From Convolutriloba macropyga (taxonomy: Eukaryota): a stretch of DNA of 64,000 nt. The DNA is taken from the NCBI RefSeq assembly GCF_964194025.1, contig NC_134482.1:41664001-41728000 (forward strand), read 5' to 3'. Shown here in pieces: positions 7,736 to 59,370 of the stretch (its first letter is position 1; each line of letters opens with the position of its first letter). The notes under the pieces were generated by a model, which ran no database searches, had not been told where the DNA came from, and saw nothing but the letters and a program-made list of their open reading frames with translations. The position numbers and the translations under genes were made by a program.

Positions 7736-7739
7736 CGAA

Positions 7740-34795: not shown

Positions 34796-34904
34796 AAGAA
34801 AAAAATTTTAATTGTAAATGAGTTAACAACTCCAGTCGTAACAAGTATAACGCTCTTTTAGTAAAAAAAAACACACGAGAATCAACCAAACGATGAGTTT
34901 TTGA

Positions 34905-37900: not shown

Positions 37901-39350
37901 TAAGTTGTTGATATTGAATTATTCTCGACTGCTCTAGGTAGTTGTTTCACTACATCTGTCGGGGAAAAAGTTAAACATGTTCAAACTTGAAAAGATTGCT
38001 GAATTTTGACGTATTCGTGGACATCAATTTTCTGATACAACAAAACGGGCGAGTCGCAATGCGAGCCACTGCTCGATAGGGGAGGAGTTTAGTCGAAGGA
38101 AGCTCCTCATTGAGTGGAATTAAGCTTTTCCTATAAAAGTTTTTTTTATTTTTTGCGAATTCATGAAGTTCTTGTTTGAGTTCTTTTTTTTTATCAAAAC
38201 ACACAAAACACCCTGGCCTTTAGGGCGAGTTGGGAATTTTTGCCAGCTCCTAATAGAGGTTTTGGGTGATCAGTAGCTACGGAGTAGACCTGAATTTTGT
38301 TCAGAATTATCTACGTGGCGCGATTAGATGTTTTGCGCGATTTTGCGAGAAATCGGGCTCTCAAAAATCGGGGTACGCTTCATGTCACAAATGATTTCTC
38401 CAAAACTGCTGTAATAAATCGGACTGCAATGCTCGCGTTTTTTTGGTCTTAACCCCTTTTGCTGGCAGTGTTATTAGTTTCCCAAGTCGCCCTAATAAAA
38501 AAGTTGAAGGAAAGAATTTGTGAAACTATCACATTGAGAAAGGAATTTAATGTTTTGTACTTTTTCAAATTTCTCATTCAGTTTTTGACTAAAACGAGTG
38601 AGTATTGGCATTATATGTTGCTCTTAAGACGTGCTTCTCGGGAATGGCTTGTCACAGTCACTGGAAACGTTCTCTAGAACTGTTATTCACTAATGAATGC
38701 GGAAAAACAAATTTTTTCTCAAATTTTGTGGCTGAGTGGTGTTTTCCGCAAATGAATAGATTTTTGAGCGTGTGTTTTGTGTTTTCTAGACACCATTTAA
38801 GTTGTTGAAGCTAATGAAATCAAATAATGGGGTTAATACAACAATTTTTCTTTTTTCACGATTTCATCAAATTTCTGTGGATGTTGTTTTATGTCATAAC
38901 ACACAAAACATCATAACCTTCATGGTGAGGTGGGAAATTTTTTCCCACCTCACCATGAAGGTTTGCCGTGACCCAGAACGTCGAATTGGACAAGAATTAC
39001 ACCCACAAATACGCCGGGAACGCTGTTTCACGTTGTTTTACGTCGGTTCTGGAAATCATGGGCTTCGATTTTAGCCCAAAAAATGGGGTACAGAACAGTA
39101 GTCTGTTAATATCTGCTAAAGTACTGGACCAAATTAAACGGGAGTGGTCGCATTTTGTTAGCACTGAACCCCTCTTGCTTGCAGTACTTGGTTGGTTTCC
39201 CAAATCGGCCTAATCAAAAAGTTATTAATGTTCAAAATTGAAATAGTTCGAATTTTCGGGCTATCTTGCGTGACCCAAATTTTGTTACAACAAAACACGG
39301 GAGTTACCAAACAAATGTTAGTATTTTAGAATCCTCAGTTAGTGGGGAGT
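34905..39350. repeat. Tandem array, ~908-bp unit, about 3.6 conserved copies plus two degenerate partial copies, inside the transposon
   Basis: CCTTCATGGCGAGCT at 34945, 35858, 36762, 37670; degenerate versions at ~38217 and ~38917. Confidence 0.9.
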
Positions 39351-40014
39351 ATGCCCATATATATTTTGCATAGCATTTTACGGAATTGAGATTGTCAAAT
39401 TTGGCTCTGAAGTCAGGTCACCACGCTTTTTTGGTCATTTGGTACGGTACCTTTATTTTGTTATAACTCCTTGAAGAGTGCACCGATTGGGCTCATTTTT
39501 TAATATGATGCGTATCCCAATCAGTGCTACAAACTGTACTAAGGGGAATTGTTTTTGTTTCGCCGTTTTAGAGAAATTGTCTAGTAAACTTGACCTCGAT
39601 TTTAGCATCAGAAGCGGTTGACACCATGATCGCACCACTTTGAAGCTTTGAATTTTGTCACTTCGGGAATTGTTGTTTTGGAGTACCAGTATAAGCACTG
39701 TAGTCCCCATGTAATGTGGGGAAACTCTACTCCAATTTTCAGCCATATTGGTTGAGGGGTTGATGTTCTCTCCCCTTATTACTTATATGTATACTATTAT
39801 TCTAAGGTGAGGGCGTTTCGCCCCATGGGGTGCACCCCCCCTGTCCCGTTGAGACGCTGGTTAGTCAACTCCCCCCCTCCTCTTTCTTTTTGGTGAACCC
39901 CATGCATTTGTACGGCGTGCGTGCGTGCGGCTTTCACGGCGTTGCGATGCGTTTTCTCCGGCGTTTCGTTGATCCCGTCTGTACACGGGCAAGTCTATTT
40001 GATAAAAAGTTCTG

Positions 40015-40817
40015 ATGTTCCCTTTCAGCAGTAAGTGTCACCCCAGCTGCACGGGTCGAGGCAGCGCCCAAATAGTCTGGTCGGCGACCGGACTGGGCTC
40101 CAAATTAGTAGGATAGGATTAGCATAATTTGTACTTCATGTTGCTTAAGAGAATACTAGGTTGCCTCTATTATAGTTGGATCGAGACAGCACTCTTAGAG
40201 TCAGGTCGGCGACCTGACAGGCCTGGAAGATAGTAGGCTAACAGTAAATAAAGTTTCTAGTTGCTTGTTAACACAAATGTTCAGTACTCACTATAACTTC
40301 AGTTGAAACGAATAACCTGCTACGTAACTTCAACGTTGGACTGATAGGCGATTCTCATCTGACTAGAATGGCTCCCTTCATGCAACCACAAGTTCGCATT
40401 ATTGGCAGAGGTGGCGAAAGAGCTAGTAACTATGCTAGATATTTGCAGGAAGTCAGACAGCTGGACATACTTCTTATTTTTATTGGAGGAAATGACATAA
40501 CTGGCAAGAACGGCTCTCCAGCGTCCTCTAAATTGAAGGACTTAGTACATGATATAAAGTCATTGTTCTCCTATGCAAGGTCGTACGGCATCATGGTGTT
40601 GACATGCGACATCATTCCTCGGGATGCCAACAAAATTGGCACAGACTTAACCAACAAAAGGCTGCTGAAAAGATTCAAGCGCAAGCATATTGTTCTGAGA
40701 GGTTGCTTCAACTTCCGAATGCTACGCGACACGGTGCACCTAGAAAATTATGACGAGTTATGGGAGCTCCTGGAGGCTAAAATTGTTCAGAGGTTGCATG
40801 ATGCGTATCGGTTTTGA
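40015..40817 (+). CDS. SGNH/GDSL hydrolase, ~176 aa; predicted exons 40015-40030 and 40303-40817
   Basis: VGLIGDSH (block I, upstream of the ORF-track start), GRGG (II), IFIGGNDI (III), DTVHL (V). ATG TTC CCT TTC AGC A|GTAAGT ... TTCAG|TT GAA gives an in-frame splice; fold call is strong, exon 1 is inferred. Confidence 0.8.
40056..40237 (+). other. Two homologous 57-nt hairpin modules in the predicted intron
   Basis: 40056-40112 and 40181-40237 align without gaps; stems GTCTGGTC-GGC-GACCGGAC and GTCAGGTC-GGC-GACCTGAC. Confidence 0.7.
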
Positions 40818-41309
40818 AGCCCTGCAATAGCCAACTTGTTCAACTGAAGGGCCGATTGAGGCCTTATTTATTCTGATTGACGTTGCTAATTTCTTTTCTT
40901 TTATGTTTTGTGTTTTGAAGCATCAGTAAATGTTTCCATTTATTCAAGCCTTTTGAACTTAAATTTTCTGCAAAACAATAATTGAAGTGCCGATTGTCGC
41001 ACAACTTTGCAACTTTGCCTAAAAAGAGGTAAAATGAGCGCTATTATTGATTGACATTAAGTTGTTTCTACTTACTTTATTAATAATTTCCTTGATGTGT
41101 TGTCGATTGCTTGTTTAGTGAACATGTTTAACAATCAGACATTTCGGGTTTTGATGCGCTTCTCTCGGAAACAGGAGTAGTGCCGATTGTGGCACAATTT
41201 TGCCTAATAGATGTAAAAATTGTAATAGAGGTTTTTTTTGCATTGCCACTTTTGATTTAAAACTAGGTCGGTTCTGGTCCCTTGAGATCTTTAAGGCAAT
41301 TTAATTATT

Positions 41310-44300
41310 CAGTAACAAACTAATGAAGTGCTTGGAGGCAATAGGGCTGTTTTTTTCTTCCAAGGGTGGGTCAAAAGATGTGTTTCCCTCGCCAAAACGT
41401 TTCTTTCAGAAGGTCTTTGATTGTTTTAAATTGCTTCTTATCTGACAGCAATTCAGGTTTTTCGGGGCTTTCTGGTTGTGGTTTCTATCTACCAGACTAT
41501 TAAATACTGCTGTGCAGAAGAAACGGATCGGGTTTTGAAAATTTGGCTGAGAAATTCAGTTTTTCTTTGGAAATTGGCCTTTTTTTCTCTGAGATGTACA
41601 ATTTTGTCCTTTTTTAGACCAACCTGGGGTAACATATATTGGTTTCTGGTGGTTTTTGTGGTCATGAATCGTTTGTTATGTATATGGAAACGGGTGCATA
41701 CGAAATCTAAGCCAACAGGTACTTCATCTTGGTTTGCAACTTGTCTGAATGAGGTCGGCTTTTCACTTCAGTTATTGTTCGTTTTTGCCTAATTTCGCGT
41801 ACCACTTGATTTTTCACTGCTTTATGCCTCTTCGAACCCTGTGGGGAATCAATTATGCAAAGCTATGAACTGGTTGGAGGTAATAGGGCTGGTTTTTCTT
41901 GCAAGGGTGGGTCAAAAGATGTGTTTCTCTCGCCAAAACGTTTGTTTCAGAAGGTCTTTGAATGTTCTAAATTGCTTCAAATCTGATAGCAATTCAGGTT
42001 TTTCGGGGCTTTCTGGTTTTGGCTTCTCTCTACAAAACTGTTAAATACTGCTGTGCAGAAGAAACGGGTCAGGTTTTGTATTTTTGGCTGAGAAGTTTGT
42101 TTTTCTTTGGAAATTGGCCTTTTTTGTCTGAGAGGTACAATTTTGTCCTTTTTTAGGCCAACCTGTGGAAAGATATATTGGTTTCTGGTGGTTTTTCTGG
42201 ACGTGAATCGTTCGGTATGTATATGGAAACGGGTGCATTTGAAATTTGAGCCAACAGGTACTTCATCTTCTTGGTTTGCAACTTGTCTGAATGAGGTCAG
42301 CTTTTCACTTCAATTTTCGTTCGTTTTTTTGTTTAATTTCCCTTACCACTTGACTTTTCACTGCTTTATGTCTCTTCGAACCCTGTAGGGAATCAACTTT
42401 GCAAAGTTTTGAACTCGTTGGAGGTAATAGGGCTGGTTTTTCTTGCAAGGGTGGGTCAAAAGATGTGTTTCTCTCGCCAAAACGTTTCTTTCAGATGGTC
42501 TTTGAATGTTCTAAATTGCTTCAAATCTGATAGCAATTGAGATTTTTCGGGCTTTCTGGCTGTGGCTTCTCTCTACAATACTATTAAATACTGCTGTGCA
42601 GAAGAAACGGGTCAGGTTTTGTAAATTTGACTGAGAAGTTCTGTTTTTCTTTGGAAATTGGCCTTTTTTGTCTGAGAGGTACAATTTTGTCCTTTTTTAG
42701 GCCAACCTGTGGTAAGATATATTGGTTTCTGGTGGTTTTTCTGGACGTGAATCGTTCGGTATGTATATGGAAACGGGTGCATTCGAAATCTGAGCCAACA
42801 GGTACTTCATCTTCTTGGTTTGGAACTTGTCTGAATGAGGTCAGCTTTTCACTTCATATTGTGTTCGTTTTTTTGCCTAATTTCCCTTACTACTTGACTT
42901 TTCCTTGCTTTATGTCTCTTCAAACCCTGTAGGGAATCAACTATACAAAGTAATGAACTGGTTGGAGGTAATAGGGCTTGTTTTTTTTTGCAAGGTTGGG
43001 TCGAAAGATGTGTTTCTCTCGCCAAGACATTTCTTTCAGAAGGACTTCGATTGTTCTAAATTGCTTCAAATCTGATAGCAATTGAGGTTTTTCGGGGCTT
43101 TCTGGCTGTGGCTTCTCTCTACAATACTATTAAATACTGCTGTGCAGAAGAAACGGGTCAGGTTTTGTAAATTTGGCTGAGAAGTTCTGTTTTTCTTTGC
43201 AAATTGGCCTTTTTTGTCTGAGAGGTACAATTTTGTCCTTTTTTCGGCCAATCTGGGGCAACATATATTGGTTTCTGGTGGTTTTTCTGGACGTGAATCG
43301 TTCGGTATGTATATGGAAACGGGTGCATTCGAAATCTGAGCCAACAGGTACTTCATGTTCTTGGTTTGCAACTTGTCTGAATGAGGTCAGCTTTTCACTT
43401 CATATTGTGTTCGTTTTTTTGCCTAATTTCCCTTACTACTTGACTTTTCCTTGCTTTATGTCTCTTCAAACCCTGTAGGGAATCAACTATACAAAGTAAT
43501 GAACTGGTTGGAGGTAATAGGGCTTGTTTTTTTTTGCAAGGTTGGGTCGAAAGATGTGTTTCTCTCGCCAAGACATTTCTTTCAGAAGGACTTCGATTGT
43601 TCTAAATTGCTTCAAATCTGATAGCAATTGAGGTTTTTCGGGGCTTTCTGGCTGTGGCTTCTCTCTACAATACTATTAAATACTGCTGTGCAGAAGAAAC
43701 GGGTCAGGTTTTGTAAATTTGGCTGAGAAGTTCTGTTTTTCTTTGCAAATTGGCCTTTTTTGTCTGAGAGGTACAATTTTGTCCTTTTTTAGGCCAACCT
43801 GTGGTAAGATATATTGGTTTCAGGTGGTTTTTCTGGACGTGAACCGTTCGGTATGTATATGGAAACGGGTGCATTCGAAATCTGAGCCAACAGGTACTTC
43901 ATCTTCTTGGTTTGCAACTTGTCTGAATGAGGTCAGCTTTTCACTTCAATTTTTGTTCGTTTTTTTTGCCTAATTTCCCTTACTACTTGACTTTTCACTG
44001 CTTTATGTCTCTTCAAACCCTGTAGGGAATCAACTATGCAACGTAATGAACTGGTTGGAGGTAATAGGGCTTGTTTTTTTAGCAAGGTTGGGTCGAAAGA
44101 TGTGTTTCTCTCGCCAAAACATTTCTTTCAGAAGGACTTCGATTGTTTTAAATTGCTTCAAATCTGATAGCAATTGAGGTTTTTCGGGGCTTTTTAGTTG
44201 TTGCGTCTCTCTACAATACTAATAAATACTGCTGTGCAGAAGAAACGGGTCACGTTTTGTAAATTTGGCCGAGAAGTTCTGTTTTTCTTTGGAAATTGGC

Positions 44301-47300
44301 CTTTTTTGTCTGAGAGGTACAATTTTGTCCTTTTTTAGACCAACCTGTGGTAAGATATATTGGTTTCTGGTGGTTTTTCTGGACGTGAATCGTTCGGTAT
44401 GTATATGGAAACGGGTGCATTCGAAATCTGAGCTAACAGGTACTTCATCTTCTTGGTTTGCAACTTGTCTGAATGAGGTCAGCTTTTCACTTCAATTTTT
44501 GTTCGTTTTTTTGTCTAATTTCCCTTACCACTTGACTTTTCACTGCTTTATGTCTCTTCGAACCCTGTAGGGAATCAACTTTGCAAAGTTATGAACTCTT
44601 TGGAGGTAATAGGGCTGGTTTTTCTTGCAAGGGTGGGTCAAAAGATGTGTTTCTCTCGCCAAAACGTTTCTTTCAGAAGGTCTTTGAATGTTTTAAATTG
44701 CTTCAAATCTGATAGCAATTCAGGTTTTTCGGGGCTTTCTGGTTTTGGCTTCTCTCTACAAAACTTTTAAATACCGCTGTGCAGAAGAAACGGGTCAGGT
44801 TTTGAAAATTTGGCTGAGAAGTTCTGTTTTTCTTTGGGAATTGGCCTTTTTTTGTCTGAGAGGTACAATTTTGTCCTTTTTTCGGCCAATCTGGGGTAAC
44901 ATATAATGGTTTCTGGTGCTTTTTCTGGATGTGAATCGTTCGGTATGTATATGGAAACGGGTGCATTCGAAATCTGAGCTAACAGGTACATCATCTTCTT
45001 GGTTTGCAACTTGTCTGAATGAGGTCAGCTTTTCACTTCAATTTTTGTTCGTTTTTTTGTCTAATTTCCCTTACCACTTGACTTTTCACTGCTTTATGTC
45101 TTTTCGAACCCTGTAGGGAATCAACTTTGCAAAGTTATGAACTCGTTGGAGGTAATAGGGCTGGTTTTTCTTGCAAGGGTGGGTCAAAAGATGTGTTTCT
45201 CTCGCCAAAACGTTTCTTTCAGAAGGTCTTTGAATGTTCTAAATTGCTTCAAATCTGATAGCAATTCAGGTTTTTCGGGGCTTTCTGGTTTTGGCTTCTC
45301 TCTACAAAACTGTTAAATACCGCTGTGCAGAAGAAACGGGTCAGGTTTTGAAAATTTGGCTGAGAAGTTCTGTTTTTCTTTGGGAATTGGCCTTTTTTTG
45401 TCTGAGAAGTACAATTTTGTCCTTTTTTCGGCCAATCTGGGGTAACATATAATGGTTTCTGGTGCTTTTTCTGGATGTGAATCGTTCGGTATGTATATGG
45501 TAACGGTTGCATAGAAAATCTGAGCCAACAGGTACTTCATCTTCTAGGTTTGCAACTTGTCTGAATGAGGTCAGCTTTTCACTTCAATTTTTGTTCGGAT
45601 TTTTGTCTAATTTCCCTTACCACTTGACTTTTCACTGCTTTATGTCTCTTCGAACCCTGTAGGGAATCAACTTTGCAAAGTTATGAACTCGTTGGAGGTG
45701 ATAGGGCTGGTTTTTCTTGCAAGGGTGGGTCAAAAGATGTGTTTCTCTCGCCAAAACGTTTGTTTCAGAAGGTCTTTGAATGTTCTAAATTGCTTCAAAT
45801 CTGATAGCAATTCAGGTTTTTCGGGGCTTTCTGGTTTTGGCTTCTCTCTACAAAACTGTTAAATACCGCTGTGCAGAAGAAACGGGTCAGGTTTTGAAAA
45901 TTTGGCTGAGAAGTTCTGTTTTTCTTTGGGAATTGGCCTTTTTTTGTCTGAGAAGTACAATTTTGTCCTTTTTTCGGCCAATCTGGGGTAACATATAATG
46001 GTTTCTGGTGCTTTTTCTGGATGTGAATCGTTCGGTATGTATATGGTAACGGTTGCATAGAAAATCTGAGCCAACAGGTACTTCATCTTCTAGGTTTGCA
46101 ACTTGTCTGAATGAGGTCAGCTTTTCACCTCAATTTTTGTTCGGTTTTTTGTCTAATTTCCCTTACCACTTGACTTTTCACTGCTTTATGTCTCTTCGAA
46201 CCCTGTAGGGAATCAACTCTGCAAATTTATGAACTGGTTGGAGGTAATAGGGCTGGTTTTTCTTGCAAGGGTGGGTCAAAAGATGTGTTTCTCTCGCCAA
46301 AATGTTTCTTTCAGAAGGTCTTTGATTGTTTTAAATTGCTTCAAATCTGATAGCAATTCAGGTTTTTCGGGGCTTTCTGGTTTTGGCTTCTCTCTACAAA
46401 ACAGTTAAATACCGCTGTGCAGAAGAAACGGGTCAGGTTTTGAAAATTTGGCTGAGAAGTTCTGTTTTTCTTTGGGAATTGGCCTTTTTTTGTCTGAGAG
46501 GTACAATTTTGTCCTTTTTTCGGCCAATCTGGGGTAACATATAATGGTTTCTGGTGCTTTGTCTGGATGTGAATCGTTCGGTATGTATATGGAAACGGGT
46601 ATATACAAAATCTGAGCTAACAGGTACTTCATCTTCTTGGTTTGCAACTTGTCTGAATGAGGTCAGCTTTTCACTTCAATTTTCGTTCGTTTTTTTGTCT
46701 AATTTCCCTTACCAGTTGACTTTTCACTGCTTTATGTCTCTTCGAACCCTGTAGGGAATCAACTCTGCAAAGTTATGAACTGGCTGGAGGTAATAGGGCT
46801 GGTTTTTCTTGCAAGGGTGGGTCAAAAGATGTGTTTCTCTCGCCAAAACGTTTCTTTCAGAAGGTCTTTGAGTGTTTTAAATTGCTTCAAATCTGATAGC
46901 AATTCAGGTTTTTCGGGGCTTTCTGGTTTTGGCTTCTCTCTACAAAACTGTTAAATACCGCTGTGCAGAAAAAACGGGTCAGGTTTTGAAGATTTGGCTG
47001 AGAAGTTCTGTTTTTCTTTGGGAATTGGCCTTTTTTTGTCTGAGAGGTACAATTTTGTCCTTTTTTCGGCCAATCTGGGGCAACATATAATGGTTTCTGG
47101 TGCTTTTTCTGGATGTCAATCGTTCGGTATGTATATGGAAACGGGTGTATACGAAATCTGAGCTAAGAGGTACTTCATCTTCTTGGTTTGCAACTTGTCT
47201 GAATGAGGTCAGCTTTTCACTTCAATTTTCGTTCGTTTTTTTGTCTAATTTCCCTTACCACTTAATTTTTCACTGCTTTATGTCTCTTCGAACCCTGTAG

Positions 47301-50300
47301 GGAATCAACTTTGCAAAGTTTTGAACTCGTTGGAGGTAATAGGGCTGGTTTTTCTTGCAAGGGTGGGTCAAAAGATGTGTTTCTCTCGCCAAAACCTTTC
47401 TTTCAGAAGGTCTTTGAATGTTCTAAATTGCTTCAAATCTGATAGCAATTGAGATTTTTCGGGGCTTTCTGGCTGTGGCTTCTCTCTACAATACTATTAA
47501 ATGTTGCTGTGCAGAAGAAACGGGTCAGGTTTTGAAAATTTGGCTGAGAAGTTCTGTTTTTCTTTGGGAATTGGCCTTTTTTTGTCTGAGAGGTACAATT
47601 TTGTCCTTTTTTCGGCCAATCTGGGGCAACATATAATGGTTTCTGGTGCTTTTTCTGGATGTGAATCGTTCGGTAGGTATATGGAAACGGGTGTATACGA
47701 AATCTGAGCTAACAGGTACTTCATCTTCTTGGTTTGCAACTTGTCTGAATGAGGTCAGCTTTTCACTTCAATTTTCGTTCGTTTTTTTGTCTAATTTCCC
47801 TTACCACTTGACTTTTCACTGCTTTATGTCTCTTCGAACCCTGTAGGGAATCAACTTTGCAAAGTTTTGAACTCGTTGGAGGTAATAGGGCTGGTTTTTC
47901 TTGCAAGGGTGGGTCAAAAGATGTGTTTCTCTCGCCAAAACGTTTCTTTCAGAAGGTCTTTGAATGTTCTAAATTGCTTCAAATCTGATAGCAATTCAGG
48001 TTTTTTGGGGCTTTCTGGTTTTGGCTTCTCTCTACAAAACTGTTAAATACCGCTGTGCAGAAGAAACGGGTCAGGTTTTGAAAATTTGGCTGAGAAGTTC
48101 TATTTTTCTTTGGGAATTGGCCTTTTTTTGTCTGAGAGGTACAATTTTGTCCTTTTTTCGGCCAATCTGGGGCAACATTTAATGGTTTCTGGTGCTTTTT
48201 CTGGATGTGAATCGTTCGGTATGTATATGGAAACGGGTGTATACGAAATCTGAGCTAACAGGTACTTCATCTTCTTGGTTTGCAACTTGTCTGAATGAGG
48301 TCAGCTTTTCACTTCAATTTTCGTTCGTTTTTTTGTCTAATTTCCCTTACCACTTGACTTTTCACTGCTTTATGTCTCTTCGAACCCTGTAGGGAATCAA
48401 CTTTGCAAAGTTTTGAACTCGTTGGAGGTAATAGGGCTGGTTTTTCTTGCAAGGGTGGGTCAAAAGATGTGTTTCTCTCGCCAAAACGTTTCTTTCAGAA
48501 GGTCTTTGAATGTTCTAAATTGCTTCAAATCTGATAGCAATTCAGGTTTTTTGGGGCTTTCTGGTTTTGGCTTCTCTCTACAAAACTGTTAAATAACGCT
48601 GTGCAGAAGAAACGGGTCAGGTTTTGAAAATTTGGCTGAGAAGTTCTGTTTTTCTTTGGGAATTGGCCTTTTTTTGTCTGAGAGGTACAATTTTGTCCTT
48701 TTTTCGGCCAATCTGGGGCAACATATAATGGTTTCTGGTGCTTTTTCTGGATGTGAATCATTCGGTATGTATATGGAAACGGGTGTATACGAAATCTGAG
48801 CTAACAGGTACTTCATCTTCTTGGTTTGCAACTTGTCTGAATGAGGTCAGCTTTTCACTTCAATTTTCGTTCGTTTTTATGTCTAATTTCCCTTACCACT
48901 TGACTTTTCACTGCTTTATGTCTCTTCGAACCCTGTAGGGAATCAACTTTGCAAAGTTTTGAACTCGTTGGAGGTAATAGGGCTGGTTTTTCTTGCAAGG
49001 GTGGGTCAAAAGATGTGTTTCTCTCGCCAAAACGTTTCTTTCAGAAGGTCTTTGAATGTTCTAAATTGCTTCAAATCTGATAGCAATTCAGGTTTTTTGG
49101 GGCTTTCTGGTTTTGGCTTCTCTCTACAAAACTGTTAAATACCGCTGTGCAGAAGAAACGGGTCAGGTTTTGAAAATTTGGCTGAGAAGTTCTGTTTTTC
49201 TTTGGGAATTGGCCTTTTTTTGTCTGAGAGGTACAATTTTGTCCTTTTTTCGGCCAATCTGGGGCAACATATAATGGTTTCTGGTGCTTTTTCTGGATGT
49301 GAATCGTTCGGTATGTATATGGAAACGGGTGTATACGAAATCTGAGCTAACAGGTACTTCATCTTCTTGGTTTGCAACTTGTCTGAATGAGGTCAGCTTT
49401 TCACTTCAATTTTCGTTCGTTTTTTTGTCTAATTTCCCTTACCACTTGACTTTTCACTGCTTTATGTCTGTTCGAACCCCGTAGGGAATCAACTTTGCAA
49501 ATTTTTGAACTCGCTGGAGGTAATAGGGCTGGTTTTTCTTGCAAGGGTGGGTCAAAAGATGTGTTTCTCTCGCCAAAACGTTTCTTTCAGAAGGTCTTTG
49601 AATGTTCTAAATTGCTTCAAATCTGATAGCAATTCAGGTTTTTTGGGGCTTTCTGGTTTTGGCTTCTCTCTACAAAACTGTTAAATACCGCTGTGCAGAA
49701 GAAACGAGTCAAGTTTTGAAAATTTGGCTGAGAAGTTCTGTTTTTCTTTGGGAATTGGCCTTTTTTGTCTGAGAGGTACAATTTTGTCCTTTTTTCGGCC
49801 AATCTGGGGCAACATATAATGGTTTCTGGTGCTTTTTCTGGATGTGAATCGTTCGGTATGTATATGGAAACAGGTGTATACGAAATCTGAGCTAACAGGT
49901 ACTTCATCTTCTTGGTTTGCAACTTGTCTGAATGAGGTCAGCTTTTCACTTCAATTTTCGTTCGTTTTTTTGTCTAATTTCCTTACCACTTGACTTTTCA
50001 CTGCTTTATGTCTCTTCGAACCCTGTAGGTAATCAACTTTGCAAAGTTTTGAACTCGTTGGAGGTAATAGGGCTGGTTTTTCTTGCAAGGGTGGGTCAAA
50101 AGATGTGTTTCTCTCGCCAAAACCTTTCTTTCAGAAGGTCTTTGAATGTTCTAAATTGCTTCAAATCTGATAGCAATTCAGGTTTTTTGGGGCTTTCTGG
50201 TTTTGGCTTCTCTCTACAAAACTGTTAAATACCGCTGTGCAGAAGAAACGGGTTAGGTTTTGAAAATTTGGCTGAGAAGTTCTGTTTTTCTTTGGGAATT

Positions 50301-51197
50301 GGCCTTTTTTTGTCTGAGATGTACAATTTTGTCCTTTTTTCGGCCAATCTGGGGCAACATATAATGGTTTCTGGTGCTTTTTCTGGATGTGAATCGTTCG
50401 GTATGTATATGGAAACAGGTGTATACGAAATCTGAGCTAACAGGTACTTCATCTTCTTGGTTTGCAACTTGTCTGAATGAGGTCAGCTTTTCACTTCAAT
50501 TTTCGTTAGTTTTTTTGTCTAATTTCCCTTACCACTTGACTTTTCACTGCTTTATGTCTGCTCGAATTCTGTAGGGAATCAACTTTGCAAAGTTTTGAAC
50601 TCGTTGGAGGTAATAGGGCTGGTTTTTCTTGCAAGGGTGGGTCAAAAGATGTGTTTCTCTCGCCAAAACGTTTCTTTCAGAAGGTCTTTGAATGTTCTAA
50701 ATTGCTTCAAATCTGATAGCAATTCAGGTTTTTTGGCGCTTTCTGGTTTTGGCTTCTCTCTACAAAACTGTTAAATACCGCTGTGCAGAAGAAACGGGTC
50801 AGGTTTTGAAAATTTGGCTGAGAAGTTCTGTTTTTCTTTGGGAATTGGCCTTTTTTTGTCTGAGAAGTACAATTTTGTCCTTTTTTCGGCCAATCTGGGG
50901 TAACATATAATGGTTTCTGGTGCTTTTTCTGGATGTGAATCGTTCGGTATGTATATGGTAACGGTTGCATAGAAAATCTGAGCCAACAGGTACTTCATCT
51001 TCTAGGTTTGCAACTTGTCTGAATGAGGTCAGCTTTTCACTTCAATTTTTGTTCGGTTTTTTGTCTAATTTCCCTTACCACTTGATTTTTCACTGCTTTA
51101 TGTCTCTTCGAATCCTGTAGGGAATCAACTATGCAAAAGTATGAACTAGTTGGAGTTAATAGGGCTGGTTTTTTCTACGAGGGTGGGTCAAAAGATT
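41310..51197. repeat. Satellite array, ~546-bp unit x18, inside the transposon
   Basis: GAGGTAATAGGGCTGGTTTTTCTTGCAAGGGTGGGTCAAAAGATG recurs every 541-547 bp from ~41336 to ~51152; edge copies more diverged. Confidence 0.98.
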
Positions 51198-51456
51198 TTC
51201 TCTGGGCATGAATTGTACAAAATTTTTTTGAAAAAGGGATTCATATGAAATTTGAGTCATTATAAGCCAATGTATGTGAATCTAGATAAGCCTAATCCCA
51301 ATTAAAGTTTTTCTATATTTCGATTTAGGTCGGGTCGTGTATCTTAAGACCTTAAAGTCGATAATTTAAAACAAGTTTTCTGTTCGAAATAAGCCAACTT
51401 TCTGGATTCGATGTTTTAAATACTTGTAATAATTATAGCTTTTCTCTAGACGTGTA

Positions 51457-52539
51457 ATGGAAAGACCGGTAAGGACAACCAAGGGTCATTCGTCCCAAAA
51501 CTACGAGGAATTCGACCAGGACCTAATGCGCACCGCTCGAAATTTGTGGTGGATGTTTAGCAAAAAAGGTGACCTGAAGCCAATTGTAATACCTTACAGT
51601 AGCGTCATGTTTCCGACCACGATGACCATTCGGCAAAAAGTAAATCTTCAATATAAACCCCCAAAGTCGAAGGTTAATCTCTTCTACCAAGGAAAGACGA
51701 TCGAGTGCTCTCTCATTGGTGTGATCGGCAATGGTTTTGTAAATGATGCCATGAGACAGGCACACCAAAAGATGGCGGATGCTGGTGGTCAATTAAGTGA
51801 CGTAAGTATCCATGAGAGTCAGCCTTCGCCGGCTCCTAATCTGAAAAGACTGAGTCCGCAACCTGTTCCTTCTAAGGCAAAGAAGATGATCAAGTTCGTG
51901 CAGCCGGAGACTGAAGATCCTCGTGTGGAATTGGATGTTGACGACAATGAGACTTGCGAGACAGTGGACGAAAATGAAACCGCAGGCCCGGATAGCCTTG
52001 AAAATTTGTCGGACGACCTTGTCAATCTCTTTGATAAGAAATTCAGGCAACTCCTTGTTGTACATGAAGACAATGCAAGAAAACTTGCCCTCGAGAACAA
52101 CCGTTTTCGAGCTCGTTTCACTGATCTTCTGAGAAGGCAAAAGGGCGAGGAGACTGTTATGCTAGCGCCGAGTGATAACTCTGAGCCGCTAATTTTCAAC
52201 GGCTTCGATCTGATGACCCTAACGCCTGTTGGTGGAGCGTCAGCGTTCGGCAGACTCTTGGCAGCTACAATTTTTGGCGCAGAAAACAATTGCGATTTGA
52301 TTACTCATCGTTTGGATATAAAGGTAACTAAGAACAACTGCCGTAAAGCAGCTGATCCCGTCAAAGAAGCGCTGTTCAAGGAGTGTGTTGGGCGTTTTTT
52401 CTCAAAAGATGCTGCTAGGGCCCTACGTGACGCAATTCGTGGTGCGAACCAATATGGAACGGACATGAAAACAAAATATGCATCACTCTCAGAGATCAAC
52501 AAAAATGTTGAGCCGGATGATAATTCTGATGACGAATGA
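51457..52539 (+). CDS. Transposon accessory protein, 360 aa, coiled coil plus C-terminal BEN-like domain
   Basis: Intact long ORF; SAFGRLLAATIFG...RKAADPVK...AIRGANQY resembles the BEN pattern; clearly paralogous to 53403-54101. Confidence 0.7.
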   Translation: MERPVRTTKGHSSQNYEEFDQDLMRTARNLWWMFSKKGDLKPIVIPYSSVMFPTTMTIRQKVNLQYKPPKSKVNLFYQGKTIECSLIGVIGNGFVNDAMRQAHQKMADAGGQLSDVSIHESQPSPAPNLKRLSPQPVPSKAKKMIKFVQPETEDPRVELDVDDNETCETVDENETAGPDSLENLSDDLVNLFDKKFRQLLVVHEDNARKLALENNRFRARFTDLLRRQKGEETVMLAPSDNSEPLIFNGFDLMTLTPVGGASAFGRLLAATIFGAENNCDLITHRLDIKVTKNNCRKAADPVKEALFKECVGRFFSKDAARALRDAIRGANQYGTDMKTKYASLSEINKNVEPDDNSDDE

Positions 52540-53402
52540 AGATCTTGTATGGCCGACTGTGGCCTTGCGTTATTAGTTTTGCAACAACAATGTATTTTGC
52601 TTCCTCTTCATTAAATTTCAATCTGAAACTTTGCAATGCTATTGTGTTGATTTTTTCCACGATGAAAATAGACGTATGTTAGGCCGACTGTGGCCCAGGT
52701 TCAAACTGATATTTGTTAAACTATAAGTTTTTGCTACGCGCAGTTTGTTCTGTCCATATAGCCGCAAACTGACTGGTCAGTCTGTGTTCAAATTTTCCTT
52801 GTTTCCATGAGTTTGTTCTAAATTGAAACGTGCTGTTTTATTGCTTTTGGCTTTTCGGTTTCATATTCAGTTTGTTTGCTGTAAAATTGATAAAACGGGG
52901 AGATACAGGAAGACAATAATATTTTGTACTAATTTTAAATGCAGTTCGGGAATTGAGTTTATTTTGCAGTTTCTCAAGTTCTATTTTACGTTTTGTCTAT
53001 TGTTTAGTTTGAGTTGCATGTCTTCTGCTGCTTCTTTTTGAAAGCTTGTTTTAAACAGCTTTTAAGTTCATTCCCAGAAATTTGTCTAAACCAGATACTT
53101 TTCAGTTTGTTAAATAAAGTTTGCAAAACAACGCATTATTTTTTTGATTAACTGGAAGAATACAGCATGCTGGCAGAGTTTATCACATCGAGTGTTGTTG
53201 TTACAAAAGCACTTTTAACTCGAAACAGATAACGTTGCTTTACATAATTTGGAAATCAAGGGCGGAAAATATTGAGTAGATTTTAATCAATATTCTATTT
53301 TCACTAACGATAGATGTGTTGGTTGTACTCTAAATCCAAAACTCAATACTACATACGTTAGTTGTTTGATAACAATGTCAATTTCTTTTCAGAAACTTGA
53401 AA

Positions 53403-54101
53403 ATGCCACGAGTTGATAGAAAAAGGTTGCTTTCGAGCTCCGAATCTGAAAGTGATGGAGAAATCGCAGACTCTCAAGTTGATAATGTAGGCCCAGAATC
53501 GCAATGTCAAAGCAATGTTTATACTCAAGAAATTGATTCCACTCTTCCAACGCCGAGCAAAACTCTAGCCCCATTGACTAGCATGACTTCAACACCAAAG
53601 CGAACGGATAAATTGGTGCAATTAGAAGTTCGTCTTGATACGCTTATTGGGGCGCACAAAAACAGATTGAGACAGCTGCGACATGAGTTGAAAGCGGATA
53701 ATGCCGAATTTTTGAGTGTCGTTGAAGGTGAACTTTCTGGCGGACAAGTGGCATACTCCAATGAGAATGAAAAGGCTGTGATTCATAATGGTCGTAATCT
53801 TATGGACATTGTTGCGGGTAGTGACCCTTGTCGTTTTGGTCGTGATCTTGCGAAAGCTATTTTTGGCGAGGAGGAAGATTGCCTTCTACAAAATTACATG
53901 ATTGGCCAACAGCGCAGCAAGATGAACTCGCGACCACGTGTTGAACTTTCTTTGGAAAGACTTTTCACAACAGTCGTCCGACAAAAATATCCAAAGGTGC
54001 CCGATTACTGCCTCAGAGAAGCAAGAGCAGCCGCTAACCAGTTGGGTCTTGACTTCAAAAAGAAAGCGCTGAAAAGAAACGCTACAGAACCAGGTTGCTG
54101 A
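53403..54101 (+). CDS. Second transposon accessory protein, 232 aa, coiled coil plus BEN-like domain
   Basis: Intact ORF (first ATG 53403); NGRNLMD...CRFGRDLAKAIFGEEEDCLL...LREARAAANQLG aligns with NGFDLMT...SAFGRLLAATIFGAENNCDL...LRDAIRGANQYG. Confidence 0.7.
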   Translation: MPRVDRKRLLSSSESESDGEIADSQVDNVGPESQCQSNVYTQEIDSTLPTPSKTLAPLTSMTSTPKRTDKLVQLEVRLDTLIGAHKNRLRQLRHELKADNAEFLSVVEGELSGGQVAYSNENEKAVIHNGRNLMDIVAGSDPCRFGRDLAKAIFGEEEDCLLQNYMIGQQRSKMNSRPRVELSLERLFTTVVRQKYPKVPDYCLREARAAANQLGLDFKKKALKRNATEPGC

Positions 54102-55102
54102 GTTTAGCTGCATTGCCATTGAAAGTGTTTACATAAAGGAAAGCCGATTGTGGCGAGGGCTTTCAACAACTGCTGTTTTGCCATTTGAGTTTTCATGTTT
54201 AGCTTTCCACAAAATAGAATGACCAATTGAGGTCAACTCAGACTTTTAGTTCGATTCATTTGTCATTTGTTTTATTAAAATTTCCTTTTAGTTTTCTTTG
54301 AATGTTGAAAACTATCTTTGCATAGTCGTCCGGATGTTTTTCTAAGAAGTTTTCTATGAGCAGACTTTGAGTTCAAAGTTATTGCACAGCCGTTTAAGTT
54401 TTTCACTTCTTGCTTTCCTATTGGTTAAAAATTTGATTTGAACATAGATAATACTGCTTAGTTGTGTTCATAAAGAGTCAGTACGTATTGTTATCCGGAA
54501 TCTGAAATGTTAGCTTCATGTATTTGCTGAAAGCAGTGCTTTTTGTTGTTTAAAACTTTGTTCATTGCTCTTGATGTAATGTGACTTTAATGCTGAATTA
54601 ACTTGATACTCACATGAGTTTTTGGTTGTAAAGGGAAGACAGGTCATAATAACCGTAAAACCAATCATTTAGTTAGGTACTTTTTGAAATCCAATACTGG
54701 CTGATTATCTTTGTTGTTGGTAAGTTTTTTGACTTTGTTTCGAGACAATTGTCTAATAGATTTGAGACAAACGAGCAATGTTTGAGACTAAATTACGAAC
54801 AGGATTCAGACTTTATAGAGATGGGTTCAGCTAATGGGAGTCCAGATTTTGAAACTTTTTTCTTTCGATATCATTTTCAGAGTTAAACCTTGTGTTTGAG
54901 CACCAGCGATAAAGTTTTCGATCCAATTAATCTTGCGTCTTCAATCTACGATTTTGAAGTATTGCTGACAATTTGGCCCATGCATAAGCGCTGAAGAAAG
55001 GAGATTTTTTGACGTTATTCCACTGCAGAAATCTGTATAACTTTTGTTCAGAAAATGCGTTAATTACATAAAAGTGAATGTGGAGGCTTTTATTAAATAA
55101 AT

Positions 55103-55710
55103 ATGGAAGCTGCAACGAAAAGCAAGTCGATAATCTTTGCCCAGTGTGACGCTCAGATATCGAACACCCTTATAGAGAAGAAAAACAGACATGTTCAATC
55201 AATGGTAGACGAAGTTGATCCAGATGTTTTCCAGCGGCTGCTTATAACGGATACTAATTACAGCAAAGTTTTTCGACTTCTTTCGTCGTGTTATGACGAA
55301 GCTTTGAAGGCCGGTTATTTTTTTGAGCACGACTGCTTCGGGGGGTATGGTTTGTTCTATGGCCAAGAAGACAGTATCAAAATTACGAGGAAGCGCGATA
55401 TTTTATTGCCCGGCTTACATGCACTATTACAAACAGTTGACGATAAGGATTTGCCAAATTTCACACCCATTTCTATTTTTGCCGGTACTGATATTTGTAA
55501 AAAGAGCCGAATCATGGTTGGGCCTGTTCCTTTTGCAAATCACTCCTGCAAACCCAACACGGAGTATGTTGCTTCTTTTTTTAAACACAAAAATGCGTAA
55601 AGTTAAAAGCTATCAGAAACATCGAAAAAAATGAGGAACTGACGGTTTTCTACGGAGAAGATTTTTTCGGTATTAAAAACTGGGAATGCAGGTGTCCTCA
55701 TTTTGATATG
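55103..55710 (+). CDS. SET-domain lysine methyltransferase module, Suv4-20/KMT5B-C/Set9-like, split by a 1-nt frameshift near 55589-55593
   Basis: GGYGLF, IMVGPVPFANHSCKPNTEY, then in the transposase frame KCVKLKAIRNIEKNEELTVFYGEDFFGIKNWECRCPH, matching Suv4-20-type GPAAFINHDCRPN and EEI..YG..FFG..N..CxC motifs. Confidence 0.88.
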
Positions 55711-58066
55711 CATGGCGCTCCTCCAGTTGTTTTTAGCAACAAGCAGATGCAATTGATTTCTGCTAATCTTGAAAAGCGCTTTGTTAGGACCTTTAGAAGA
55801 AAAAATCGAGAAGATATAAAGAATAAGAGACGGAAAATGACGGAGATGCGTAATTTTGATGCTAGTGAGTCCAGTTGTTTGAGTAATAATTATGAAACTA
55901 CTTTTGAAAATGATGAGGCTACAATCGAAAATGAAGAAAATATAATCGAAAATGATGAATCTACACTTGCGGATGAATCTGGGGTCGGCACTGGTGTCGC
56001 AATTGATGATTTTAACGGTGCTCACAGCACACTGAGCGACCATCCGCCGTCACCAATTGCACATTTTCCCATTGTATTAGCTAGAGAAACGATTGATGAG
56101 CACCCAAGTGAAAGAAGATTGCCATCAAGTGATTTAGAGGACGATGAAAACTGTGCTGAAGCGAGAGGAAATAATTTAGTCACGGGTTTGAATCTAATTT
56201 TAGCGAAACACGGAACTGCCGATGAGGAGGCCAAAGACTGGATATCGTTCATGAAAACAGCTTTTCCTCACGCCCTAATTCCTAGTTTCAAAAGCCTCAA
56301 AAGACGTTTCCATCTAACGAAAGACAAGCATGAGGGTTTCCTCGTGACATGTCCCGATGGTCAATACTGGATACTGAACTTCATGTCAGAGATATATGAA
56401 ATAGTTAACTCAAACAAAGAAATTATAGCCAAGTATTCTTCCACGAGAGACGAAATGGCTGACCTTAAAGTGAAGTCGTGTTTTGATTCAGAACAAAAAA
56501 TAATGACAATCTCCTTGATTTTGAACTCCGATGGTGTTTGTTTTGTTAAGTCGAGTCGATTGCAACTGTGGCCATTTTGGTTAGCCATTGCCAATCTACC
56601 ACCAATAAAACGTTCTACATACAAAAATATTGTTCTTGCCGCACTTTTGCGTGGAACGACTAAACCTGATTGGGAAAAGTTGGTCAGCGATTTTTCAGAA
56701 AAACTTTCTCAGCAATTCACGATTGAGTACAATCAAGTCCAGTACAAGTTAGTTGTCAAAATTGTTTTAATAGTTGCCGATATCCCGGCCCGGGCGTCTA
56801 TGCTGAATATGCATCATCATAGGGCTAAGTATGGATGCACACTCTGTTTAACGGAAACTCAAGCTATAGGGAAGTCAAGATATTTTCTTATCAAAAAGTT
56901 CCAAATGAGAAGACCTGAGACTCACAGATCTCATTTGCAAGCTCTTGAAAACGGCAATCTAGCTCATTTCAAAGGTGTGAAAGGGAAAAGCCCTTTTATC
57001 AAAATTGTACCAAAACTGCCTTTGACAGCGCCATTCGATGTAATGCATCAGGTTTATCTCGGCGTGACTAAGGTTCTCCTTGAAGTTATAGAAAAGAAAA
57101 CACATAGAAATGATTTAATATGCCTGAACAATACAGTGGCAACGTTAGCTACTCCTGTAAAAATTAAAAGGTCTATTCGTCCACTGGATGATCTGAAATT
57201 TTTCAAAGCGAACGAGCTGAAAGTCTGGTTGCTGTATGTTGGCCCCGCACTTTTTGGTGAAACAATAAACGAAGTGAGAGCGCAGCGGTTCTGGCTGCTG
57301 AGCTATGGTATCCGACTCCTGTTGGCGTCTTCGAATTTTTGCAAAGAGGCCGAGAGACAGATTAATCAATTTTTGCGTGAGACCAAAGATGAGTACACAG
57401 AACAGGTTTTCTCCGCAAATATTCATTCGTTGTCACATTTGACTTGGCAAGTGCAGAACTTTGGGCCTCTATGGACAACGTCAAGCATGATGTTCGAATC
57501 TGCCAATTATCAACTATGCTCAAAGTTCACAGGCACAGTTGCCTGTGAACTTGCCCCTTCTAGTTGAGAGGTACCAAAGAAACAAAGAAGTTTTCCGATC
57601 AACAATTGTTGAAGATCAACTTGCTCCGTTTTGCCAAAAAATGAAAGCTGAAAAGTTGCGCAAAGATGTTTATATGCCATTTTTTCAAGTACCTGAGGAC
57701 TTGAGAAAAGTTGGGCGAGTTTTTTATCGAAGCAGGCATCTGGAATTTTTCTACTTTGAAGCTTTGCCTAACAAAAAGGATTGCTATATTTCGGCTCGTT
57801 GTGATGGCAACCTTCTCTGCGGTAAGATACGGGCCTTTTTCAGGGAACGAGACGAAGAATTTGTGGCAATAGAACTAATGAAGATTTTAAAATCTCATTC
57901 TTCCCCGATAGGTTCGTCCTGTGAAGTTTACTCTTATCACGTTGTTGAGGATTCTTCGGAGCGGCTATCCGTTAACGTTAAAGCTGTATGCGACAAGTTC
58001 TTTCACATGGCACTAGCAGACACAGTTTTTCTGATACCTCTCATAAAAATTTTCGATAATGATTGA
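55708..58066 (+). CDS. EnSpm/CACTA DDE transposase (Transposase_21/DUF4218-like), frameshifted near 57540
   Basis: LILNSDG, QLWPFWLAIANLPP, VADIPARASMLN, YGCTLC, PFDVMHQVYLGV, FKANELKVWLLY, NIHSLSHL..QVQNFGPLWTTSSMMFESAN; C-terminus continues in ORF 57539-58066. Confidence 0.93.
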
Positions 58067-58714
58067 AAAGCTAAAGCTGAAAAGTCAACCAATTGAGGCT
58101 TCAAAGAAAACGACAGTCCTCAAGTGATAAAAAGTCGAATCAAATATGAAGACTCACTAAACAGCTACAATTAAGTAAAGCTGACTGCGGCTTGGACAAG
58201 TACAAAACTGATTGACATTTTTTGCCTTTCTCAAACTTCCTCTTGCTTGATTTCCTCTTCTGCCTGAGAGATTCAAAAGCAAACTGTAATTAGTTTTCCT
58301 TGGATTGGACGTTAGGATCGTAATGTGGTTGCAAAACCGATTGTGGCTTTTAAATAGCTGAACATTATATATTGAAACTTCTGAATACCAGTACAGTTTG
58401 AAAAATACTTCTTGTAATTAAGTCAAATAACAGTGCATCCTTTATGAAACAATAATTGCTTGTTCATTGCTCTTGTTTTCAATTTCATTTAATTGTTGAA
58501 TTAATTGATTTACTTTTGAAGTCTTTTGTAAGAGACGAGCTGATCATTAAACAGGCTAAGATAACTTTTAACTTATTATGCTTTCGAGCTTTTCACATAG
58601 GGATCATATATGGCTTTGTTATTAGCTTACGAGTGTCCTGCAAGGTTTAGTGGTCATCATACCAAAGCAGTCATCGATTTCCAAGTAATCGAACAGGGAG
58701 TATTGAGAATCTCT

Positions 58715-59370
58715 GTTGGGATTACCAGGAAATAATATATATGATTTCCTGGTAATCGTACAAGGATCATATTTGATCCTTGTACGATTACTAGGAAATC
58801 ATGTATTTTTTTTCCTGGCAATCCTAGCAGAGACTATCAATAATCCTTGCACGATTACTAAGAAACCATATTGAGTTTTTCTGATTATCGTGAACTCATA
58901 TCTGATTTTCTGGCAATCGTACAAGGGTCATATATGGTCCTCGTATGGTTACAAGGAAATCTTATATGACTTCCTGGTAATCGTACAAGGATCATATAAG
59001 GTCCTTGTATGGTTACAAGGAAATCATGCATGATTTCCTGGTAATCATACAAGGATCATATATGATTTCCTGGTAATCATACAAGGATCATATATGATTT
59101 CCTGGTAATCATACAAGGATCATATATGATTTCCCTGATTTCATACAACTTTCATCAATCATTTATCGTGGTTTTTGAGTGCTCCTGAACATTTCTTCTG
59201 TTTTTTTTTCTTAAAAGTCACACTAGGATTTTGTATGATTTCCCTGATTTCATGCAAGGATCATGTATGATTTCTTAGGTTCCATACAAGGATCGTACTA
59301 GGAAATACGTTATGATTTGTATGACATCATATATGATCCTTGTAGGATTACCGGGAAAGGTCAACCCGGG
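58715..59370. repeat. Right subterminal repeat array (TTTCCTGGTAATCATACAAGGATCATATATGA, direct and inverted) and right TIR
   Basis: More than 10 copies in both orientations; same motif as the left end. Confidence 0.92.

Follow-up and report, generated by a model that had tools for sequence, protein, structure and literature searches.

A small hairpin motif recurs two or three times downstream of each gene of a giant Tnp2/CACTA-type transposon, which lies within a 64-kb stretch of the Convolutriloba macropyga genome (contig NC_134482.1, positions 41,664,001 to 41,728,000, forward strand; this whole stretch is hereafter called the window, and positions are given in its coordinates). The four genes concerned encode an SGNH/GDSL-like protein (SGNH), two proteins with a putative BEN-like fold (BEN-1 and BEN-2) and a SET-like + Tnp2 transposase. 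The recurrence, noticed in an earlier note made from the letters of the window, is a real and statistically strong observation and, judging from related elements, an evolutionarily conserved one; in these comparisons, base pairing, strand, position and loop sequence all bear the marks of selection. On balance, we regard it as probable that the motif is a sense-strand RNA hairpin, located in the 3′ untranslated regions (UTRs) of the mRNAs of the element and bound by a protein.

Hairpin copies in the element

The ten copies listed in the earlier note were all found again, with the same coordinates and the same letters:

40848..40865, + strand: SGNH hairpin 1, AGGGCC-GATTGA-GGCCTT, 6 bp including one G-U; minimum free energy (MFE) -10.1 kcal/mol
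40987..41002, + strand: SGNH hairpin 2, GTGCC-GATTGT-CGCAC; weak, innermost C/C; local duplicate of hairpin 3 (25 nt, 92%)
41180..41195, + strand: SGNH hairpin 3, GTGCC-GATTGT-GGCAC, 5 bp
52551..52564, + strand: BEN-1 hairpin 1, GGCC-GACTGT-GGCC
52682..52695, + strand: BEN-1 hairpin 2, GGCC-GACTGT-GGCC
54143..54154, + strand: BEN-2 hairpin 1, GCC-GATTGT-GGC, 3 bp; a 7-bp outer stem is a possible alternative
54220..54235, + strand: BEN-2 hairpin 2, TGACC-AATTGA-GGTCA, 5 bp
58088..58099, + strand: transposase motif copy 1, ACC-AATTGA-GGC; weak, two C-G pairs alone can form
58178..58193, + strand: transposase hairpin 2, AAGCT-GACTGC-GGCTT, 5 bp, innermost U-G
58336..58347, + strand: transposase motif copy 3, ACC-GATTGT-GGC; weak, two C-G pairs alone can form

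Measured from the stop codon of the preceding gene, the stems start at 31, 170 and 363 nt (SGNH), 12 and 143 nt (BEN-1), 42 and 119 nt (BEN-2) and 22, 112 and 270 nt (transposase); the largest distance, 363 nt, agrees with the earlier proposal that all copies lie within ~380 nt of a stop. The description of the set as ten copies of CC-RAYTGN-GG holds for eight of them, but the copies at 40987 (C/C closing pair) and 58178 (U-G closing pair) do not fit the strict pattern. A search of the 64-kb window for CCRAYTGNGG gave ten matches versus 1.00 expected, a number that none of 100 shuffles attained. Eight of these matches are inside the element, on the + strand, from 40852 to 58346; the other two, approximately the number expected by chance, are outside of it, at 13851 (- strand) and 20562 (+ strand).

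In MFE folding, six of the ten copies adopted the proposed hairpin, and the copy at 54143 formed a longer alternative stem with the same loop; the copies at 40987, 58088 and 58336 did not form the hairpin. Thus, seven copies are convincing hairpins and these last three are weak. Apart from the motif, local alignments of the four gene tails scored no better than shuffled sequences, as expected from the claim that the surrounding UTRs are unrelated, with the exception of the 25-nt local duplication that contains SGNH hairpins 2 and 3.

A second recurring word, TGATTGAC(A/G)TT, is present in the SGNH and transposase tails at 40873, 41049 and 58209. It contains the GATTGA of the hairpin loop and has no stem.

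Strand and position

For comparison, we used eight further families of related elements: four (B, C, D and F) came from the genome and four (G, H, I and J) from contigs in an ENA assembly of this species. An array, E, was added; the copy in the window represents family A. The proteins of families B, C, D and F are 45-61% identical to those of family A, and the BEN-1 proteins that define families G to J are 50-51% identical to that of this copy.

With the sense strand set by the open reading frames, 198 kb of element sequence, a set that includes redundant copies, holds 62 core motifs in the sense orientation and none in the antisense orientation. When one copy per family was considered (131 kb), the count of hairpins of at least 4 bp was 40 sense and 0 antisense. 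The hairpins are concentrated between genes, with 62 in 45.5 kb of intergenic DNA versus 2 in 44.5 kb of coding DNA, and they are found close to the upstream stop: the first hairpin is located at most 100 nt from it in 17 of the 26 intergenic intervals, versus 5.6 expected at random (p = 5e-5), and its median relative position in the interval is 0.09 versus 0.32 expected. The word GATTG showed no strand bias once the hairpins were masked (26 vs 20 between the strands), indicating that the hairpin, and not the pentamer, is the unit.

The earlier note had named a background-level frequency, strand symmetry and a lack of conservation in sister elements as grounds for abandoning the motif; instead, the analysis gave 10 matches versus 1.0 expected, a strand ratio of 40:0 and sister families that carry the motif.

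The tails as such, taken as the first 400 nt past the stops in all families, are T/G-rich on the sense strand (sense vs antisense counts of 49 vs 12 for TTTGTT and 25 vs 0 for TGTGTG). T/G-richness of this kind is expected around cleavage and polyadenylation sites.

Base pairing and the possibility of a DNA site

The hairpin consists of a stem of 4 bp, at times 5 bp, whose two inner pairs are always C-G, and a loop of six bases, G/A-A-Y-U-G-W. Of the loop positions, A2, U4 and G5 are invariant in all 27 aligned instances; position 1 is G or A, position 3 is U or C, and position 6 is U or A in most cases. A loosely conserved, A-rich 5′ flank (U-G-N-A-N-A) precedes the stem.

Outside the inner pairs, the arms vary in concert, with pairs 3 and 4 alternating among G-C, A-U, U-A and C-G. 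In the 27 distinct instances, 73% of cells pair versus 64% in shuffles, and the covariation score is 0.345 versus 0.158 in shuffled alignments, a value that none of 500 shuffles attained; slid controls, in which the partner was moved by 1-3 columns, scored 0.04-0.20. For the pair of columns 7-20, we counted 10 GC, 7 AU, 4 UA, 3 GU, 1 CG and 2 unpaired combinations. In a larger set of 80 distinct instances picked by their ten-base core alone, pair 3 is of the Watson-Crick type in 71 cases versus 34 expected from the column composition (43 G-C, 14 A-T and 14 T-A), and pair 4 in 49 cases versus 23 expected; pair 5 showed no Watson-Crick excess in this set. Since many instances are related by duplication, the test was repeated with one vote per distinct arm combination, in which pairs 3 and 4 form in 18 (p = 0.0008) and 15 (p = 0.0025) of the 21 combinations, respectively. 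The earlier statement that the stems covary is therefore borne out on all of these larger sets. The variation is seen even within single loci: the stems of the copy in the window include GGCC, GTGCC, TGACC and AAGCU, and those of one further locus, L034, include CACC, GGACC, CGCC and GCACC.

The fact that the arms change within the element and between families while the loop remains fixed points to a folded single strand rather than to a protein site in duplex DNA, and the strict sense orientation, together with a location in the first part of the region that follows the stop, points to RNA.

The main alternative that has to be weighed against these observations, which we consider rather unlikely, is that the motif is a site in duplex DNA for the BEN-fold proteins of the element. 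In this view, it would insulate, or it would be a roadblock that works in one orientation, terminating transcription and keeping the gene units apart. By analogy with Drosophila Elba, the two paralogues might act as a heterodimer on an asymmetric site. BEN-2 is predicted to adopt a BEN-like fold: in its AlphaFold2 (AF2) model, the predicted local distance difference test (pLDDT) is 88-96 across most of residues 131-230, and the best seven matches of this model in a Foldseek search against the PDB are all structures of BEN domain-DNA complexes, with TM-scores by target of 0.43-0.64 and weak E-values of 0.5-1.4. Language-model features (Atlas feature match, score 0.87) also point to BEN for this protein, and a long helix that is predicted upstream of its domain could mediate dimerisation. 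Against this, the Pfam search gave no match of any kind for BEN-1 or BEN-2, BEN included, and a profile search of the PDB sequences with these proteins found no BEN. We consider the BEN label for the two proteins plausible but not proven.

Published sites of BEN-domain proteins include CCAATTGG for Insensitive and CCAATAAG for Elba (PMC6317261, PMC4281564). One third of the motif copies hold CCAATTG or CCAACTG, and 27 of the 80 instances begin with CCAA(T/C)TG, near the Insensitive site, in an element that encodes two BEN-fold proteins. Additionally, BEN-solo factors act at transcription-unit boundaries, and the motif likewise lies between genes; sites in one orientation after every gene would suit a directional terminator or boundary, and tandem arrays of 15-30 copies, described below, resemble arrays of binding sites. 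The full palindrome CCAATTGG was present in none of the 27 aligned instances, and its CCAATTG half was found in a minority of copies; the core keeps one base between TG and GG, which excludes the full palindrome. The commonest form of the motif, CCGATTGTGG, is not palindromic and differs from all published BEN sites known to us. Moreover, a duplex site needs no complementary flanks, yet pairs 3 and 4 change while they stay complementary, both within the element and between families, and a double-stranded site does not predict a strand bias of 40:0. The earlier note had put forward a DNA site for the BEN proteins as its alternative; what survives of that proposal is the CCAATTG-like minority form and a weakly supported BEN fold, whereas the covarying arms and the strict sense orientation are not what it predicts.

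Sister families and tandem arrays

Families B, D, G, H, I and J keep the hairpin after orthologous genes. In families B and D, it follows SGNH, BEN-1, BEN-2 and a short BEN-1-like gene at 0-55 nt past the stop, and in family D the TAG stop codon itself forms part of the hairpin stem. The stem of SGNH hairpin 3 recurs after SGNH in family B, where the loop is GACTGT. Families G, H, I and J hold many copies with other stems, namely AGCC/GGCU, UCC/GGA, CACC/GGUG, GGACC/GGUCU and CGCC/GGCG. The BEN-1 3′ ends of seven families can be aligned at the hairpin alone, which six of the seven carry. Of the eight sister families, at least seven keep a hairpin after nearly every gene.

The motif also occurs in tandem arrays. 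One of them, at L030:860-2400 (- strand; G000:C1:36397860-36399400), contains ~30 hairpins in units of 47/94 nt, in which GAGCC-GATTGT(GT)-GGCTC alternates with CAGTC-GATTGAGT-GACTG; the loops are of 6 or 8 nt, and the stem is kept. A 180-bp satellite immediately precedes it, and a region that looks coding follows. Clusters of a similar kind are present on C1, C2 and C3, and L030 is the sole one of these clustered arrays elsewhere in the genome that was sampled. In family I (L033:1590-3966), a 168/172-bp satellite of 15 units, located between two element genes, carries one UCC-GAUUGU-GGA hairpin per unit; therefore, the motif itself can be amplified as a satellite.

Such arrays also bear on the possibility, to which we assign a very low probability, that the hairpin is a passenger without function, i.e., a short quasi-palindrome that segmental and tandem duplications spread around the element, along with parts of the gene tails, and that all families then inherited. 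The arrays in L030 and L033 would fit this history, as would the plain duplicates SGNH hairpins 2 and 3, the paired AGCC hairpins of L032 (9260/9391 and 11876/12005) and the identical CTGTAG-GGCC junctions after two family D genes. Nevertheless, neutral copies would decay with their surroundings, whereas the tails cannot be aligned between families and A2, U4, G5 and the C-G pairs are unchanged. Compensated changes are also far more numerous than broken pairs (for pair 3, 28 A-T or T-A vs 9 unpaired), and the strand and the stop-proximal position are kept in eight families.

A 180-bp satellite in families B and G (L014, - strand, 5087-9766; L031:157-7342) contains a different hairpin, CC-CAAGTA-GG, with a stem of at least 4 bp and 54 copies in both loci together.

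Distribution in the genome and in other organisms

In the whole genome, GGCCGAYTGWGGCC had 48 matches versus 3 for the reversed control, and SCCGAYTGWGGS had 578 matches versus 152 for its reversed control. The excess is concentrated in copies of these elements and in their tandem arrays. By coordinates alone, copies that can be recognised as family A or B account for ~38 of the 48 GGCC-type matches, which leaves ~10 to be compared with the control count of 3. A general role as a poly(A) signal was rejected because the genome-wide excess clusters in these elements.

In searches for homologues of BEN-1 and of the transposase in a set of 5.8 billion proteins, all matches were to contigs of a single ENA assembly, some of whose proteins are 100% identical to ones encoded in this genome. 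An exhaustive search identified distant fusions of SET and Tnp2 transposase in other organisms; those at L035 (Logan ERR12380052) and L036 (GCA_013332895.1, JAAUXW010006734.1) are of ~1000 aa and 35-38% identical to the one here. In the two distant SET-Tnp2 elements with retrievable DNA, the motif was absent from the sense strand. The fusion is therefore older and more widespread than the hairpin-bearing lineage, and the motif is, as far as the sequences in the databases searched show, restricted to one species.

Comparison with known elements

The motif resembles known small protein-bound hairpins of 3′ UTRs but belongs to none of those tested. No Rfam family matched any of the hairpins at E-values up to 5; the matches listed are chance ones, to the subterminal inverted repeats of the element.

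The decay elements of Roquin, i.e., the constitutive decay element (CDE) with its Py-Pu-Py triloop and the alternative decay element (ADE) with its hexaloop, are reportedly 3′-UTR hairpins with stems of 5-8 bp found, for example, in Ox40; the ADE stem is said to be closed by C-G, in the form CACC...GGUG, and its loop to be U-rich, GUUYUA. Like the motif, they are short hairpins, often several per tail, recognised by shape and loop bases; the ADE shares the hexaloop and also the CACC...GGUG arms, which occur here in L034. However, the loop here is GAYUGW, with A2, U4 and G5 invariant, instead of the U-rich loop of the ADE, and corresponds neither to that element nor to the CDE. In addition, Roquin elements serve host immune genes, whereas the motif is confined to one transposon lineage.

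The iron-responsive element (IRE; hexaloop CAGUGN) is likewise a hexaloop hairpin of untranslated regions and has the same A, U and G at loop positions 2, 4 and 5. It differs in having C and G at positions 1 and 3, where the motif has G/A and Y, and in a C bulge five pairs below the loop, which the motif, with a stem of 4-5 bp, does not have. The loop G/A-A-Y-U-G-W excludes an IRE, and the Rfam IRE models gave no match at E-values up to 5. Smaug/Vts1 elements share with the motif a loop sequence on an arbitrary stem and multiple copies per 3′ UTR, but their loop consensus, CNGGN, is absent from it.

The 3′ stem-loop of histone genes is similar in being located tens of nucleotides past the stop of intronless genes and in its A-rich 5′ flank. 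It is a single-copy structure with a 6-bp stem, a 4-nt loop and a purine-rich downstream element; in contrast, the motif has a stem of 4-5 bp and a loop of 6 nt, it is present in one to three or more copies, and no conserved block follows it. Based on these differences and on the lack of an Rfam match, identity with the histone stem-loop was ruled out.

A functional counterpart of the histone stem-loop, which falls under the RNA reading as a special case and which we consider improbable, would be a signal for RNA 3′-end formation, with cleavage beside the hairpin, defined and possibly non-polyadenylated ends, and a coupling of mRNA fate to termination. In most genes of most families the first hairpin is 0-100 nt past the stop, the range in which histone stem-loops are located, and its 5′ flank is A-rich; BEN-1 and BEN-2 are single open frames, and AATAAA and ATTAAA are absent within 450 nt after several genes, e.g., SGNH and the transposase of family A and all three genes of family B. 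At the same time, two or three copies per tail and whole arrays are unexpected for a cleavage signal, no conserved downstream element aligns past the hairpin, and the stem and loop sizes, like the Rfam models, speak against a histone-type structure.

The RNAs of alfalfa mosaic virus and ilarviruses carry hairpins in their 3′ UTRs, flanked by AUGC, to which the coat protein of the virus itself binds. Much as proposed for the transposon, all RNAs of a multi-component element carry several repeats of one small module at their 3′ ends, which gives them a common handle, although these are plant RNA viruses and the carrier here is a DNA transposon of an animal-like genome.

Among DNA elements, the subterminal repeats of CACTA/En-Spm transposons (TnpA motifs) are also short, repeated many times inside a CACTA-type element and sometimes arranged in arrays. 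They are located within a few hundred base pairs of the termini in both orientations, whereas the hairpins are found in the interior of the element, downstream of genes and in a single orientation. An identity with TnpA-type repeats was ruled out by this arrangement and by the presence of separate 32-nt repeats at 58678-59358; these subterminal repeats already fill the terminal-repeat role, and the hairpins are distinct from them.

A probable common hairpin in the mRNAs of the element

Of the earlier proposal of a 3′-UTR RNA hexaloop that co-regulates the four mRNAs, the structured sense-strand element stands, based on covariation, the strand ratio of 40:0, stop proximity and conservation in sister families. 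That it is part of the mature mRNA, that a protein binds to it and that co-regulation or another outcome follows is what we infer from these sequence properties. In the reading that we favour, each of the genes for SGNH, the two BEN-fold proteins and the SET-transposase would carry one to three hairpins at the start of its 3′ UTR, the first usually 0-100 nt past the stop. The loop bases, presented on a generic stem, would be read by one RNA-binding protein that is specific for both sequence and shape, and this protein would more probably be a host protein than one of the element, given that no RNA-binding domain is recognisable in the latter. If a single protein reads the loop, all the mRNAs of the element would be under one common post-transcriptional control. 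Repeated copies (one to three per tail) and stop proximity are typical of protein-bound elements involved in decay, translation or 3′-end formation. Our best guess for the outcome would be mRNA stability or termination-coupled translation, or else the 3′-end formation of apparently intronless genes; whether it is stability, translation, 3′-end formation, export of intronless mRNAs or localisation cannot be told from the sequence.

Several observations weigh against this reading. The claim that the hairpin occurs after every gene holds in most cases, but family C has a single strong hairpin left, and some hairpins are more than 1 kb from any stop, others are just 5′ of the gene that follows, and still others form arrays of 15-30 units, which could equally be binding sites at the DNA level. 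With a stem of merely 4 bp, stability is marginal and the folding z-scores of the short hairpins, computed on single sequences, were not significant. Instances linked by duplication are not independent. Among mismatches, G-T exceeds A-C only slightly (18 vs 10 in the 80 instances and 7 vs 2 in the one-vote set), so the wobble pairs are no proof of which strand pairs. Among the proteins of the element, the BEN-fold ones are of a DNA-binding type and none is a recognisable RNA binder, and an ATTAAA is located between BEN-1 hairpins 1 and 2. Exact look-ups of the BEN-1 protein returned only genomic ENA contigs and no transcript contig, and four sequencing runs from one study had a uniform depth of ~400 across genes and spacers, with no joints and no ends, indicating that these runs are genomic DNA.

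The presence of BEN-fold proteins and of arrays can also be accommodated differently. The hairpins could be handles, on the nascent sense RNA or on a displaced sense DNA strand, for the BEN-fold proteins and the SET-transposase of the element, which would thereby be tethered in cis to the transcription units and to the hairpin satellite arrays, and the transposon would mark its own chromatin or delimit its gene units. The stem-loops of the roX boxes, which are repeated in Drosophila and recruit the dosage-compensation complex, are loosely comparable. We give this idea little credence next to a protein-bound hairpin in the 3′ UTRs.

DNA transposons that carry several genes and reach 25-40 kb are, to our knowledge, rare, and we know of nothing on how their genes are coordinated. 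A selected hairpin of 14-18 nt after nearly every gene would provide a concrete handle on this question, and the factor that reads it would be one on which the whole lineage depends. If that factor is a host protein, the transposon lineage has tapped a post-transcriptional pathway of its host; if it is one of the BEN proteins of the element, the range of BEN-domain targets is extended. The motif is new and its kind, a small hairpin of the 3′-UTR type, is familiar; its carrier is an unusual family of giant transposons, and for the annotation of these elements and of their gene ends the motif is a compact diagnostic.

The carrier element

The element and its other features are as follows:

34503..59370, + strand: giant Tnp2/CACTA-type element, 24.9 kb, delimited by the start and end of similarity to ~11 other genomic copies
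40368..40817, + strand: last coding stretch of the SGNH/GDSL-like gene, TGA stop at 40815-40817; Pfam PF13472, E 5.3e-5, below the curated cut-off
41240..51130, + strand: 546-bp satellite, 18 units, separating the SGNH tail from BEN-1; its units do not consist of the hairpin motif
51457..52539, + strand: BEN-1, 360 aa, a single open frame; its C-terminal domain aligns with that of BEN-2
53397..54101, + strand: BEN-2, 234 aa, a single open frame; long helix followed by a predicted C-terminal BEN-like fold
55103..58066, + strand: coding region of the SET-like + Tnp2 transposase, three open frames (55103-55600, 55708-57567 and 57539-58066)
58678..59358, no strand assigned: subterminal 32-nt direct and inverted repeats of the 3′ end, of a sequence unlike the hairpin motif

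The limits were set by comparison with the 1.18-Gb genome, in which ~11 other copies are 90-99% identical to the element: similarity begins at position 1004 of the query that starts at window position 33500 and stops at position 1471 of the query that starts at 57900. The termini are inverted (CCCGGGTTG.CC), with a flanking CT on either side, and differ from those of plant-type CACTA elements. A Tnp2-family transposase, terminal inverted repeats (TIRs), CT on both sides and multiple copies identify the carrier as a Tnp2/CACTA-type (CMC) DNA transposon. The large open frame of the transposase matches PF06869 and PF02992 above the curated cut-offs, and the frame directly 5′ of it has a weak SET match (E 0.013); relatives encode SET, DUF1258 and Transposase_21 as one product. 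The SGNH protein is 48-61% identical in families B and C. The earlier note had relied on the motif to tie SGNH to the element; SGNH is indeed inside the element, but the comparison of copies places it between the termini, and the motif is thus not needed for that conclusion.

Other repeats of the element contain loops or stems of their own. In the 546-bp satellite, 12 of the 18 units (44839-50843) hold GGG-AATTGG-CCT, in which the loop is similar to that of the motif and the closing pairs are G-C, not C-G. A repeat of ~905 bp is present in four copies in the 5′ part (35085-38260), each with GAGAA-AATTGT-TTCTC. A perfect 12-bp inverted repeat with the loop AACTGT (AAGTTCACAGGC / GCCTGTGAACTT; 57523-57552, - strand) coincides with the overlap of the transposase frames 55708-57567 and 57539-58066, and other copies of the element have small indels at 57540-57548; this inverted repeat could point to a frameshift or an intron, or else to a mutational hot spot.

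Over its 5′ 5.7 kb (34503-40180), the element shares 90-96% identity with the 5′ part of copies that belong to family D (C14:50217-56065; C7:60359641-60366396), and the BEN proteins of those copies are merely ~53-57% identical to those encoded here. From these identities, the families look mosaic, with modules seemingly exchanged by recombination.

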